The translations under genes and the position numbers were made by a program. A DNA stretch of 64,000 bases. Source: Phyllobates terribilis. Its lineage: Eukaryota. The stretch covers positions 424,700,001-424,764,000 of the forward strand of contig NW_027362767.1 of NCBI RefSeq assembly GCF_046119375.1. Direction: 5' to 3'. Under the pieces are notes generated by a model. That model had not been told where the DNA came from and made no database searches. It saw only the letters and a program-made list of their open reading frames with translations. Numbering within the stretch: the stretch's first letter is position 1; each line of letters opens with the position of its first letter. Below are positions 54,602 to 62,037 of the stretch, piece by piece.

Positions 54602-57600
54602 ATCGCCCTCCATTCACTCCGTTGGGCCCATTCTGCCCCTCCGCTTCCCCGCCAGCCAGTACCCGATCTCCGGAAGACCCTCACGCGCTACCTGCGCTCT
54701 CTCCAGCCTCTCGTTGATGATGACGAGCTGGAGAGTACCCGGGAGTTGGTGGCGGAATTCCTCCGGCCCGGAGGACAAGGAGAAGAGCTGCAGAGACTAC
54801 TACATAAGAGAGCAGAGCGCACCGATAACTGGGTGAGACCGCCGGAGCTGACAATCTACACTTGTAGGAGGCCAACATCAGACCTAAATAATGAAGAATC
54901 TAATATAACCTAATAATAAAAAAGTTGTAGACCTTAGATGAATTTTGGCCAATTTTCAGACGACAGATCGGGATCTTTTAGCCACTCGTCATCCCTGACT
55001 TGATGGTCGATCGCTATTGATCAGCATGGAAGAGAATGACTTCTCTGATGGGAATTGTAAAGTTTATCAGCCAATCGTGTTCTCGGGCTGCCACTTATAG
55101 TTTCATACATCAGACCTTCCTCTAATGGTCGACTTTACCCCAATCTCGCTCCACTTATCCATTTTTTTTCACCTTTCTCTGCCCTTTGTAGCTCACAGAC
55201 TGGAGACAAGAGTGTATATACCTGGAGAATCACCTACCACTCCCCGTACACTCCAGCCCGGCCGTCATCCTCCCTCAGCAGGAATACAAGGACTGGAGGG
55301 GACAGCTGAGGTACCAGTTCTCCACTTTCGAAGGGTGGACCCCCCCAATGGGTGCATCATGTACTGTAGATTTCGGGTTGAGAAATCAGAATGTCACCTA
55401 ATGACTTGAGTCTTGTCTAGGATCGCATGGTGACGGCAGTATATAGTCCTAGACAGCAAGACAAAGAGGTCCAAAAGTCAATAGAAGTGGAACCCTCTAG
55501 CCCACCAGGTCCAGTATAATACACCTAGTCCAGTTCTGCTGCTTAGCAATGGAACGATTTAAGAAAACACCTGACCAAAGTCATGAGAGTCCTTGAAAAT
55601 CATCAGGTTGGCGCTCAGACAGCCCTGGGTGCATATTAGCCAATTGTGCCCCTCGTCTCCCCTCTTTAGAGTTGCTTGTAAAAATATTAATATAGATGAT
55701 GATATGGAGACCATTAATGTTTCTACTGGTTTTCAGATTTGCATCCAAACTAATCTGTGGTGTCCTGGATTTTAAAGCCAAAATTGAAAGGTGAGCTTTA
55801 TCTTCCCCTGTGCCGTACCGCCATCACGTGTATCCCCTGGATTGTGTAATCATGTGTCAGGACTCAGAGCCCGATCACTGCAGAAGACCTTGGGGTGTGT
55901 GCACACAGAGGGGTTTTGAGGAGTTTTTTGAAGTTGGTTTGTTGCAAAAAAAAAAAAAGCCTGAAAATTTGCTTAAAAAGCTCTAGGAAGATTCTTTCTG
56001 CTGCTCATATGTTCATTGTTTTTGAGCATTTTTTGATTTTTCTTCCTGTCCAAATTTTGAAAAAATGTCTGGTGAGAAAAAATAAAATGCCTGTTCGCTC
56101 TGAGAAGCGTCTCCTGATGGGAAACTAAAGTAATGGCTTCAGGGTTGAATCCAAAAACCAAATACTCCTCCAAAAACTCACTAATTGCTTGTTCACACAC
56201 TGCGGATTTCTTTTACCACGCCTTTTAGCCGTTGAAATAAAACGCAGCGTTTTACAGTATTGGCAAAGAAAATGACATTTCTGAAGTCTCAGCACACACT
56301 GCTTATTTTTTTCTTGCAGATTTGATCCATTGAAGATAATTGTTTTTTTGTTTTTCCAAATCCGCAGCATTAATTCTTTCAGCGTTTTTCATCTATTCAA
56401 ATGAACGGGGGAAAAAAAATGCATAAAGAAAGTGTTAAAAAAAATCTGCAAATATTCAATGTGTGCACACCCTGAAGAAGGAGCGTTTCCTGCAGTGGTT
56501 TCCACTTGGAAAAGTCATTTTTCACCTCCAAAACAAACCATGTGTGCACATAATCTATTATATTCTTGAAGTGCTACAAAAAAAAAACACAGTAGGAATA
56601 TCATCAGATCAGTAAACATAGATTAATGCTCCATAGATTAATTTTTTTACAAAAAAAAAAAGGGCAAAAAAAAAATTAGGACCATGATTCTTTGCTCGAT
56701 CTTGGACAAGCTAAGGTCTAACTCACAAGTCATGCATCCATTGGCATGGCCTAAATATGGCTGACTACGTTGTATTACTCCAGGATGGACGTCATTTCTC
56801 CTCTTGTTTTTCCCTACACAGCCCTGGTGGTCTGGAGGAGCTGTGGCGAGGTCAGAGGCTCTGCCCGGATCAGTATTACAAATTCTTTGGATCCTGCAGG
56901 GAGCCTGGAACCAAGAGAGATCGAGTCCTTCTCCATCCTCGTAGCAAGTCTCACCATGTCACCGTCTGCAAGAACTACCAGGTGACCCCCTAGGATGACC
57001 TACCTAGGGAACGGTGGCCATCTTGATATATACAGTGGTGGCCTAAAGTATTGGCACCCCTTCAATTCTGTTAGATAATACTCAATTTCTTCCTGAAAAT
57101 GATTTCAATCACAAATTCTTTGTTATCTTTATTTAATTTGTCTTCAATTAAAAAACACAAAAAGAATTGTCCTAAAGCCAAATTGGATATAATTCCACAT
57201 CAAACCTAAAAAAGGGGGTGGACAAAAGTATTGGCACTGTTTGAAAAATCATGTGATGCTTCTCTAATTCGTGTAATTAACAGCACCTGTAACTTACCTG
57301 TGGCACCTAACAGGTGTTGGCAATAAATAGATCACACTTGCAGCCAGTTAACATGGATTAAAGTTGACTCAACCTCTGTCCTGTGTCCTTGTGTGTACCA
57401 CATTGAGCATGGAGAAAAGAAAGAAGACCAAAGAACTGTCTGAGGACTTGAGAAACCAAATTGTGAGGAAGCATGAGCAATCTCAAGGCTACAAGTCCAT
57501 CTCCAAAGACCTGAATGTTCCTGTGTCTTCCGTGCGCAGTGTCATCAAGAAGTTTAAAGCCCATGGCACTGTGGCTAACCTCCCTAGATGTGGACGGAAA

Positions 57601-60600: not shown

Positions 60601-62037
60601 TTAAATCCGTGATGTCCCACTGCATAATTACATTATAAATTGCTCTATAGTACAGTGTTATGATATCCTAGTCTCGCCCACTAATCACCCTTCCTCCCAG
60701 CTCCGAGGGTCCCGGACTGCTGCCGCCCCGCACTCCTCTCACCCGGGTTCCTTCGCCAAGAAAGCTGTACTTCAACTTCCCCCCGGAGATCAAGCAGCAC
60801 GTAGAGCAAGCCAAGCAGAACCTGGACATGTGAGTCTGGGGGGCTCCATGGCTCACACATTGGGGTGCAGTCTCGTAATTAGGTGGTGTGGGGTCCTGGG
60901 TGATGCTCATGTGCGTCAGTGGGGCCTGTTGATGGGATTTTTGTACCTTTTTTAACTAAAGATAAGCAAATTGATTCTCAGAACCCTGGTGCAGCGGCCA
61001 TATCAGTAGTCCGTGGCCACCAGATGGGAGCCCGGTGAGTCGCCATTTACCTGCCGGCATCCCCGTCGCCTCTTCTGACTAGTAGACCTGGTGCGACGTC
61101 ATGGTTCATCACTCTACAGCAATGAAGTCACTACAGGGGCTACAAGCAGAAGAGGCGCCGGATTTCATCGGGTAGGAGGCAACTCTTAGGGCTTCCAAGA
61201 CTACGATCCTACATAATCATTCCTCATGAGCTGTCGCTTCCTCACCTTTCTCAGGTTGGTTAATGATCTGGACATCTGCTGTTTCTCCTTCTCTGACTTT
61301 GGAAAGAAGTTTCCGCAGCGGTACAACATGAGCCCGGGCACGTTCCTCCAGATCTGCCTGCAGCTGGCATATTACAGGTACGGCAGGCTCGGGGATCGGA
61401 GAATCCGTCTCGTGTCCTTCACCTTCTTGCTGACATTTTTGCTTTTTTTTTTTTTTTTTTTTTTACACAGGTTACATGGCTCACTGTGCACGACAACAGA
61501 GGCGGTCTCGCTCCGCGCGTTTCATCGGGGGCGGTCGGATGTCGTGCGCTGCTCCTCCCCTGAGGTGCTGGAGTTTGTTCAAGCTGCGGATGACCCCCAA
61601 AAACAGGTATGTGATACAACCGCTGGCCCATATGGACCGGACTAGATGGCAAAAGGATCTCGAGTTGAGCAAAATATTTGCAGGACACGTTGGTAGTCGG
61701 TGGCCTCCAGTCCAGAGCCCCGCCGGCATCTCTGGCACATGATGTGATTATGTCCAGCACAACGTCATCATTGTGACGTGACTATGTAGAAGAGGTGCTG
61801 GGATGGCAGCAGGCGGGAGGAGGTCCACAACGGCGCTGGACGAGGGTCCTGCAAATCTTTTCCTCTACTTTTACACCGACCCATTGTGTAACAACGAGTT
61901 TGAGAATCAGTTCATTCATCGACAGCGAGCGCAGGTCTACATCACTCCATCTGCATTATTATTTCTTTGCACAGGCGGAAGAGAAATGTTCCCTCTTAGT
62001 AAAAGCAGTAGAAAGTCAGCAAGAGGCCACCGAGCAG
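54602..62037 (+). CDS. Carnitine O-acetyltransferase-like (CRAT paralog), exons 2-12, 3' end beyond the window; catalytic His replaced by Gln
   Basis: Exons 54602-54832 (231), 55192-55310 (119), 55737-55790 (54), 56822-56981 (160), 59148-59322 (175), 59412-59590 (179), 60173-60273 (101), 60701-60829 (129), 61255-61377 (123), 61471-61606 (136), 61975-62037 (63). All are GT-AG and join in one open frame. Motifs [48 protein letters not shown]. Exon sizes match recalled CRAT structure. No exon with the DRHL or STS motifs was found before 64000. Confidence 0.92.
55893..56472. mobile_element. PIF/Harbinger-type MITE
   Basis: Termini gggtgtgtgcacac and gtgtgcacaccc with an A/T-tract-rich interior. 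A similar short copy lies at ~53850-53945. Confidence 0.5.
57033..58661 (+). mobile_element. Tc1/mariner transposon, near intact, in CRAT-like intron 5
   Basis: TA-flanked TIRs cagtggtggcc(t/a)aaagtattggcacccc. Transposase from ATG 57409 contains [14 protein letters not shown] and SPDLNPIE, with one frameshift near 57900-57930. Confidence 0.95.

Follow-up and report, generated by a model that had tools for sequence, protein, structure and literature searches.

The 64,000-nucleotide (nt) stretch of Phyllobates terribilis DNA analyzed here (the window; NCBI RefSeq assembly GCF_046119375.1, contig NW_027362767.1, positions 424,700,001 to 424,764,000 of the forward strand) contains the greater part of a gene annotated as carnitine O-acetyltransferase-like. 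This locus is the Phyllobates representative of cratb/CRAT-like, an old duplicate of the carnitine acetyltransferase gene CRAT, and its product is probably a selectively maintained pseudoenzyme that no longer performs acyl-transfer chemistry. This chemistry appears to be lost because the general base His343 is replaced by glutamine and the transition-state serine Ser554 by glycine. Ser554, which belongs to the STS motif, stabilizes the transition state in CRAT. The gene is under strong purifying selection and is not a decaying pseudogene. As it is already annotated in many genomes, we regard as new the conserved clade that lacks the histidine and a second remodeling of the protein in frogs.

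Gene structure

Eleven exons between positions 54602 and 62037 splice into 1470 nt, or 490 codons, with zero stops, and AG/GT borders flank every one of them. The two alternative frames of the same spliced sequence contain 11 and 21 stops. When the first of the eleven exons was compared by phmmer with 1.84 billion representatives, it pointed to a protein of Anomaloglossus, through which the RefSeq entry "carnitine O-acetyltransferase-like [Phyllobates terribilis]" (P0156, 629 amino acids) was reached. The spliced product is identical to residues 16-505 of this entry. Database searches were made with the exon peptides and with this identical protein in place of the whole spliced product. The twelfth exon, which initiates the coding sequence, was located by tblastn of P0156 at 51602-51646 on the plus strand, outside the interval described in an earlier note on this DNA. 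It reads ATG...ACG followed by GT, encodes residues 1-15 as the start of a basic leader without acidic residues, and its junction with exon 2 is placed at 51646/54602. Together, the twelve window exons encode residues 1-505, and the exon model derived from the letters is the same as the RefSeq model. Stops, frameshifts, and broken splice sites are absent from all twelve, and the 629-residue open reading frame (ORF) of P0156 is intact.

The remaining coding exons also lie on the plus strand. Exon 2 (54602-54832; 231 nt, phase 0) completes the leader and begins the Carn_acyltransf domain (Pfam E = 8.4e-17, positions 1-60). Exon 3 (55192-55310) has 119 nt, the same length as the corresponding exon of canonical CRAT in the frog Nanorana. 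Exon 4 (55737-55790; 54 nt) is defined by its AG/GT borders and tblastn, exon 5 (56822-56981; 160 nt) by its borders, Pfam, and tblastn, and exon 6 (59148-59322; 175 nt) by its borders and Pfam. The HGGG...NRWFDK loop, which is the most conserved stretch with 98-100% identity among frogs, is encoded by exon 7 (59412-59590; 179 nt), and the former catalytic loop by exon 8 (60173-60273; 101 nt). Exon 9 (60701-60829; 129 nt compared with 120 nt in canonical CRAT) encodes a variable linker that has no Pfam match alone. Exon 10 (61255-61377; 123 nt) corresponds to the region that contacts the 3'-phosphate and pantetheine of coenzyme A (CoA), exon 11 (61471-61606; 136 nt) to the region around the carnitine carboxylate, and exon 12 (61975-62037; 63 nt) is the last coding exon within the window. 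A tblastn search of P0156 over 62038-64000 found no additional exon, and the Phyllobates gene span of 15,062 nt places the end of the gene at approximately 66.7 kb in window coordinates.

Eight of the ten testable exon peptides match Pfam Carn_acyltransf (PF00755) in collinear order over profile positions 1-453 of 574, with E-values down to 8e-17, and full-length P0156 carries the same domain. Exon sizes and phases agree with those of the canonical Nanorana gene (119, ..., 179, 101, 120 versus 129 here, 123, 136, 63, and 138 nt). The claim of the earlier note that eleven exons form one open frame with CRAT-like sizes and phases is therefore upheld.

Catalytic and substrate-binding residues

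Residues were assigned from per-exon phmmer alignments to the solved CRAT structures of human (1nm8) and mouse (1ndb) and to related entries; for 1nm8 and 1ndb, chain offsets of +21 and +29, respectively, give mammalian CRAT numbering. His343 is the general base of CRAT, Lys419 and Lys423 bind the 3'-phosphate of CoA, and Asp430 and Glu453 form a clamp at the pantetheine site (PMC11852590). In CPT1, His473 is essential (PMC6092487). In the Phyllobates protein, the catalytic loop YEHAAAE has become YDQATAD, which corresponds to E342D, H343Q, and E347D. The alignment to both structures places the glutamine codon CAA, in the position of the general-base histidine, at 60215-60217 on the plus strand in exon 8. 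In exon 11, TYESAS is changed to TTEAVS (Y452T, ACA at 61496; S454A, GCG at 61502) and GRTD to GRSD (T465S), while Glu453 and Ser456 are kept. SEWW...Y in exon 3 reads TDWR...Y, with W102R (AGA at 55204-55206) and a retained Tyr107. In exon 10, FGKDFPK...SPD reads FGKKFPQ...SPG; here, Lys419 is kept, and K423Q and D430G are found. H343Q, Y452T, S454A, T465S, W102R, K423Q, and D430G had all been named in the earlier note in mammalian numbering, and all seven hold against 1nm8 and 1ndb with the numbering reproduced. In the part of P0156 that is encoded beyond the window, the changes in mouse numbering are R518G, S552F, S554G (STS to FTG), F566Y, and V569L.

Taken as a set, the carnitine-binding residues Trp102, Tyr107, Tyr452, Ser454, Thr465, Arg518, Ser552, and Phe566 have become Arg, Tyr, Thr, Ala, Ser, Gly, Phe, and Tyr, and Tyr107 is the only one that is unchanged. 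The roles of Tyr452, Thr465, and Arg518 in carnitine binding are taken to be those given in CRAT structure papers; our literature search found no open paper that states the roles of these three residues. The CoA-binding set is altered at Lys423 (Gln) and Asp430 (Gly) and retained at Lys419, Glu453, and Gln555. Thr553, Met564, and the HGGG...NRWFDK loop are retained as well. The two residues by which an active CRAT is recognized, His343 and Ser554 of the STS motif, are both missing, and FTG is found in P0156 and in all frog orthologs. In choline acetyltransferase (ChAT), replacement of the equivalent histidine by glutamine is said to abolish activity.

The changes are concentrated at functional sites, as the earlier note had proposed. 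Thirteen of 21 catalytic or substrate-binding positions are changed in every frog ortholog, compared with 60 of 232 other columns that never vary from hemichordate to mouse (Fisher p = 0.001).

Purifying selection and expression

The ratio of nonsynonymous to synonymous divergence (dN/dS, or omega) was calculated by the Nei-Gojobori method with bootstrap from pairwise codon alignments of the window exons. It was 0.098 for the comparison with Engystomops (L010; bootstrap 0.068-0.138) and 0.090 for Eleutherodactylus coqui (L011; bootstrap 0.062-0.126), both of which are hyloid frogs like Phyllobates. For a bullfrog mRNA (L001; 0.054) and a lizard-like mRNA (L012; 0.118), synonymous divergence is saturated (1.4 and 2.5, respectively), and these values are rough. 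The bootstrap upper limits were ≤0.18 in all four comparisons. In 80-codon windows, the minimum of omega (0.00-0.08) spans the HGGG...NRWFDK loop and the dead catalytic loop, and the codons of the latter show only synonymous differences among frogs, such as CAA/CAG and GAT/GAC. Nine frog orthologs have 360 invariant columns.

Expression is documented for the bullfrog ortholog (P0162), which is represented by at least 15 intron-free contigs of approximately 2.1 kb from separate runs, although the genomic gene spans 76 kb. All nine contigs that were read carry CAA at the glutamine position, and two end in AATAAA and a run of 23 A residues. A spliced and polyadenylated bullfrog mRNA is concluded from the intron-free contigs with AATAAA and poly(A).

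Predicted fold and targeting

P0156 was modeled with AlphaFold2 from an alignment of 44 relatives, which gave a mean predicted local distance difference test (pLDDT) value of 81.3 and a predicted template modeling (TM) score of 0.84. The best Foldseek match of the model was human CRAT 1nm8 (TM 0.90/0.95, root mean square deviation 2.1 Å, 595 columns), followed by ChAT, CROT, and CPT2. The complete two-domain CRAT fold and its tunnel are thus predicted to be retained. With a dN/dS of approximately 0.09, a bullfrog mRNA, an intact predicted fold, and a fixed loop peptide, the view of the earlier note that this is a selected, probably non-catalytic CRAT paralog and not a decaying pseudogene has been borne out.

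The first acidic residue of the leader is at position 37, seven basic residues fall within the first 45, and a helix is predicted at 2-24. The C-terminus is without the -KL peroxisomal targeting signal type 1 (PTS1). From the composition of the leader, the predicted helix, and the missing PTS1, the protein is probably imported into mitochondria only.

The cratb/CRAT-like clade

Orthologs with open frames are present in at least 13 genera of frogs, ranging from Bombina and Discoglossus to Neobatrachia, and every one of them has Gln at position 343. All 13 frog rows that span the loop carry the peptide DQATADASA without variation; Eleutherodactylus has Cys in place of the Tyr just before it. After the frogs, the search ranked a caecilian "CRAT-like" protein, paddlefish, lizards, the coelacanth b protein, gar and bowfin b, teleost b, turtles, and rays. 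With the caecilian protein as query, axolotl, lungfish, shark, further turtles, an amphisbaenian, and a snake were added, and in this search no bird, crocodilian, or mammal was ranked ahead of the first canonical CRATs.

In a distance-based neighbor-joining tree (614 columns, hemichordate outgroup), the cratb/CRAT-like (B) clade, the canonical clade, and the frog B clade each had a bootstrap support of 100/100. Frog B is monophyletic and sits on a long stem. Distances to the outgroup were 0.78-1.12 for the B clade and 0.59-0.66 for canonical CRAT, which indicates faster evolution of B. The whole B clade shares Gly554, the loss of Tyr452, V114L, G121A, M403L, mostly F549W, and the absence of PTS1; every B-clade sequence that extends over position 554 has Gly there. 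The Phyllobates protein fits this signature with Q343, G554, T452, and a C-terminal -SPL, and the same pattern is found from rays to turtles. A recent, frog-specific duplication was considered and rejected, as the gene belongs to this vertebrate clade. The earlier note was right in calling the gene a CRAT paralog; it is neither new nor specific to frogs and is the annotated CRAT-like/cratb gene.

Residue 343 was compared over approximately 120 B-clade sequences and is mostly Gln. It is Ala in the axolotl (Ambystoma, P0373) and in one unnamed transcript (P0172), and Pro in two teleosts, Prochilodus (P0383) and Epinephelus (P0397). The Epinephelus entry is deposited as "catalase" and appears to have been misnamed by its source. 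His occurs only in cypriniforms and one mormyrid, where Gly554 and Cys452 are still present; the entries are P0192-P0194, P0199-P0201, P0205, P0208, P0221, P0225, and P0226 (Cypriniformes and unnamed transcripts) and P0190 (Paramormyrops). Because the tree neighbors of the His-bearing members have Gln, the return of His looks like a reversion by a single transversion that took place at least twice. It may bear on some activity in Cratb of the zebrafish type. In several percomorph B members, Arg518 is replaced by His or Ser.

The residue losses fall into two layers. Tyr452 and Ser554 are lost clade-wide, as is His343 in nearly all members, and W102R, E342D, E347D, D430G, T465S, R518G, and S552F are anuran. 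Since sharks, rays, and ray- and lobe-finned fishes have the losses of His343, Tyr452, and Ser554 in common, these losses, and catalytic death with them, are older than the split between cartilaginous and bony fishes. The axolotl and caecilian B proteins keep Trp102, Glu342, Glu347, Asp430, Thr465, and Arg518, and the second wave, among which S552F is also counted, is therefore assigned to the anuran stem. At 15 positions, all frogs are altered and every other B protein and every canonical CRAT is conserved; these include W102R, E342D, T465S/L, R518G, and H519A/T. The caecilian ortholog is more similar to canonical CRATs (63-64% identity) than to frog B (57-59%). Between anuran families, frog B proteins are 78-87% identical; canonical CRAT reaches 86-90% when the same species are paired.

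Frogs have also kept the canonical enzyme. In seven of them (Xenopus, Bombina, Ranitomeya, Aquarana, Hyperolius, Pseudophryne, and Leptobrachium), canonical CRAT has all 21 key residues intact and ends in -SKL. The B gene and canonical CRAT are on one chromosome-scale record in bullfrog (P0162/P0331), Hyperolius (P0163/P0326), and Pseudophryne (P0160/P0327).

Proposed function and alternative explanations

Transfer of acetyl groups to carnitine is inferred to be absent because the mechanism of the family depends on the histidine, Q, A, P, and H are all tolerated at that site within the clade, and most of the frog carnitine-binding set is lost. In frogs, the cage around the carnitine carboxylate would also be dismantled (Tyr452, Ser454, Thr465, Arg518, Ser552, Trp102, and Glu347), and the Asp430-Glu453 clamp of the pantetheine channel would be gone. 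Lys419, Thr553, Gln555, Glu453, and the tunnel loops are still under constraint. The protein may thus work by binding and not by turnover, with CoA, acyl-CoA, an acyl ligand, or a partner protein as candidates, and it could act as a buffer, sensor, or regulator. Persistence of Lys419, Thr553, and Gln555 would allow a hold on CoA or an acyl ligand. On the anuran stem, the former carnitine pocket may have been refitted, possibly with a positive charge that moved from 518 to 102, which is speculation. A wider reading, to which we give a tentative place somewhat short of even chances, is that the cratb/CRAT-like clade is an undescribed family of dead enzymes whose pocket was rebuilt in anurans for a new ligand or partner and a new mitochondrial function. 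The same tentative reading includes the retention of the clade in fishes, amphibians, lepidosaurs, and turtles; the searches run brought up no mammalian, avian, or crocodilian member.

The most serious alternative is that the protein is still an enzyme, either a CRAT with residual activity or another base, or a neo-enzyme that uses a different acyl acceptor or hydrolyzes thioesters. Such a protein would account for the fixation of DQATADASA over Anura with an omega near 0, for the retained Lys419, Glu453, Ser456, Thr553, Gln555, and HGGG...NRWFDK loop, for a tunnel fold that is predicted to be intact, and for the return of His343 in cypriniforms. CPT1C offers a parallel, as its transferase activity is approximately 100-fold lower and a thioesterase activity has been reported (PMC6092487), but the reported CPT1C activity needs the very histidine that is replaced here. 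Furthermore, a position that tolerates Q, A, P, and H is unlike a catalytic residue, Ser554 is Gly in all B-clade sequences that cover it, and the frog acceptor site is without Arg518, Tyr452, Ser454, Thr465, and Trp102. We therefore consider a surviving enzyme unlikely, with perhaps one chance in seven. The clustered loss of catalytic and binding residues would also be expected of an ordinary pseudogene, that is, a dead CRAT copy whose frame is open by chance in this species, and both the LOW QUALITY flags on two frog orthologs and the faster evolution of the B clade (0.78-1.12 versus 0.59-0.66) point the same way. This reading was rejected as highly improbable, since it is contradicted by open frames in at least 13 frog genera, sharks, rays, and bony vertebrates, an omega of approximately 0.09 with bootstrap limits far under 1, canonical splice sites throughout, and a polyadenylated bullfrog mRNA; the fold prediction is confident as well. 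An artefact, in which the His codon was misassembled or miscalled or the gene model wrongly joined, has in its favor only that one transversion separates CAA from CAC or CAT. Gln (CAA or CAG) recurs in every frog ortholog and in nine independent bullfrog transcript contigs, twelve further linked substitutions are spread over other exons, and the exon model is that of RefSeq; an artefact was accordingly rejected and is given next to no weight.

Several observations weigh against the preferred reading of a selectively maintained pseudoenzyme. We infer its non-catalytic status from residues. Glutamine can form hydrogen bonds, and unexpected residual activities have come to light in pseudoenzymes. 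His at 343 in cypriniforms and the mormyrid may mean that the site still matters or that partial chemistry persists. The final 124 residues of P0156, which correspond to two exons in the E. coqui ortholog, are encoded past base 64000 and were read from the database protein, and in the collection searched, P0156 is carried by a genomic record only. The orthologs of Anomaloglossus (P0001) and Discoglossus (P0167) are flagged LOW QUALITY PROTEIN by NCBI, and the Anomaloglossus model is without three exons, those in which the HGGG loop and the dead catalytic loop are encoded; this gap could reflect local, lineage-specific decay or an assembly problem. The proposed import into mitochondria is based on composition.

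Comparison with known carnitine/choline acyltransferases

Canonical CRAT (EC 2.3.1.7; 1nm8, 1ndb) and the frog protein share the Pfam family, the two-domain fold, and 49% identity to 1nm8 in the structural alignment, together with exon sizes and phases, the HGGG...NRWFDK loop, Lys419, Glu453, Thr553, Gln555, and Met564. The frog gene differs in the replacement of His343, Ser554, and Tyr452, in an end that reads -PL instead of -KL and thus provides no PTS1, and in the additional loss of Trp102, Glu342, Glu347, Asp430, Ser454, Thr465, Arg518, and Ser552. It also adjoins PPT2 where the canonical gene adjoins PTPA, and it evolves faster. With cratb/CRAT-like of fishes, coelacanth, reptiles, and amphibians, it shares Gln343 (in most), Gly554, the loss of Tyr452, V114L, G121A, M403L, F549W, and the absence of PTS1, whereas the second wave, with 15 fixed changes at otherwise universally conserved positions, is added on the frog branch.

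ChAT (2fy2, 1q6x) is the next-best match (TM 0.86-0.89, 36-37% identity) and illustrates how this fold can accept a different ligand once its carnitine pocket is refitted. However, ChAT is active and keeps the catalytic His and the STS serine, and the frog gene groups within the CRAT lineage. CPT1C is likewise a member of the superfamily that has been diverted from bulk acyl transfer to regulatory roles, with a carnitine palmitoyltransferase (CPT) activity that is approximately 100-fold lower (PMC6092487). In contrast to the B clade, in which His is replaced, CPT1C keeps its catalytic His470, which is needed for its reported function (PMC6092487), and it is a membrane protein of the endoplasmic reticulum, whereas the frog protein has the soluble CRAT architecture. 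CPT1C is only a partial precedent because its His is kept. If our reading is correct, the present clade would be the first clear pseudoenzyme of the carnitine/choline acyltransferase family. It would also be a natural experiment in two steps, catalytic death followed by dismantling of the pocket in frogs, which could show other uses of the CRAT fold.

In the literature, cratb is treated as a normal CRAT gene; the absence of PTS1 from zebrafish Cratb has been recorded (PMC8919083). The gene has been used as an expression marker of the peroxisome pathway, and fish studies already take its expression to indicate peroxisomal or beta-oxidation capacity (PMC11463132). Our full-text literature search, in which coverage was mostly open access and an earlier mention is possible, found no paper that describes cratb/CRAT-like as catalytically dead, and no biochemical data were found in the literature searched for any member. 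The name "carnitine O-acetyltransferase (b/-like)" carries an enzyme function to hundreds of fish, amphibian, and reptile genomes against the evidence of the residues. Databases are thus probably labeling a non-enzyme as an enzyme.

Gene neighborhood

Exons of PPT2 are found at 24124-29574 of the window on the minus strand; a 61-residue exon peptide has its top match in palmitoyl-protein thioesterase 2 (1pja, E = 2e-19). Synteny was compared among frogs. PPT2 is present in the same order and orientation in the Engystomops locus (L010), a CD225-family gene lies downstream in the E. coqui locus, and canonical CRAT of Nanorana adjoins PTPA. In the human map, CRAT is beside PTPA at 9q34, and PPT2 and the CD225-family gene PRRT1 are adjacent in the class III region of the major histocompatibility complex (MHC) at 6p21.3. 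The 9q34 and MHC class III regions are classic paralogous regions. CRAT and CRAT-like may therefore be duplicates from the early vertebrate genome duplications, and the B copy would later have been lost from between PPT2 and PRRT1 in some amniotes. If this holds, CRAT and CRAT-like would be a further gene pair that links 9q34 and MHC class III.

An ORF of 438 amino acids at 18858-20171 on the minus strand has a short Pfam match to SMYLE_N, the N-terminal domain of the myomegalin/CDK5RAP2 type (E = 3e-12). A PDB search with this ORF found no relative. The ORF may belong, as one large exon, to another neighboring gene.

Transposons and tandem repeats

A Tc1/mariner DNA transposon of the Sleeping Beauty-like type occupies 57026-58668 on the plus strand within intron 5, between the exons at 56822-56981 and 59148-59322, and leaves the coding exons untouched. 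It has terminal inverted repeats of 107 nt with 92% complementarity and the domains HTH_SB, HTH_Tnp_Tc3_2, and DDE_3. Its transposase frame is broken at least once and is divided into two overlapping ORFs in different frames. A second transposase ORF of the Tc1/mariner type (297 amino acids; 47578-48468, minus strand), with the same three domains, is located approximately 3 kb upstream of the first coding exon. At 35760-38699 on the minus strand, ORF2 of a retrotransposon of the long interspersed nuclear element type runs for 980 uninterrupted codons with Exo_endo_phos and RVT_1 domains, in a region with a GC skew of 0.535.

Tandem arrays are found at 7701-10220 (36/71-nt units, 71 copies, AT-rich, GC skew 0.43), 43103-45189 (28-nt units, 74 copies), 30891-32353 (50-nt units, 29 copies), 13038-14229 (32/64-nt units), and 49426-50161 (15-nt units). 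The 49 copies of the 15-nt unit yield long pseudo-ORFs that are rich in Pro and Leu. In translated comparison, the array at 7.7-10.2 kb matches the flank of the Engystomops locus thousands of times, from which we conclude that this repeat family is common to Phyllobates and Engystomops.

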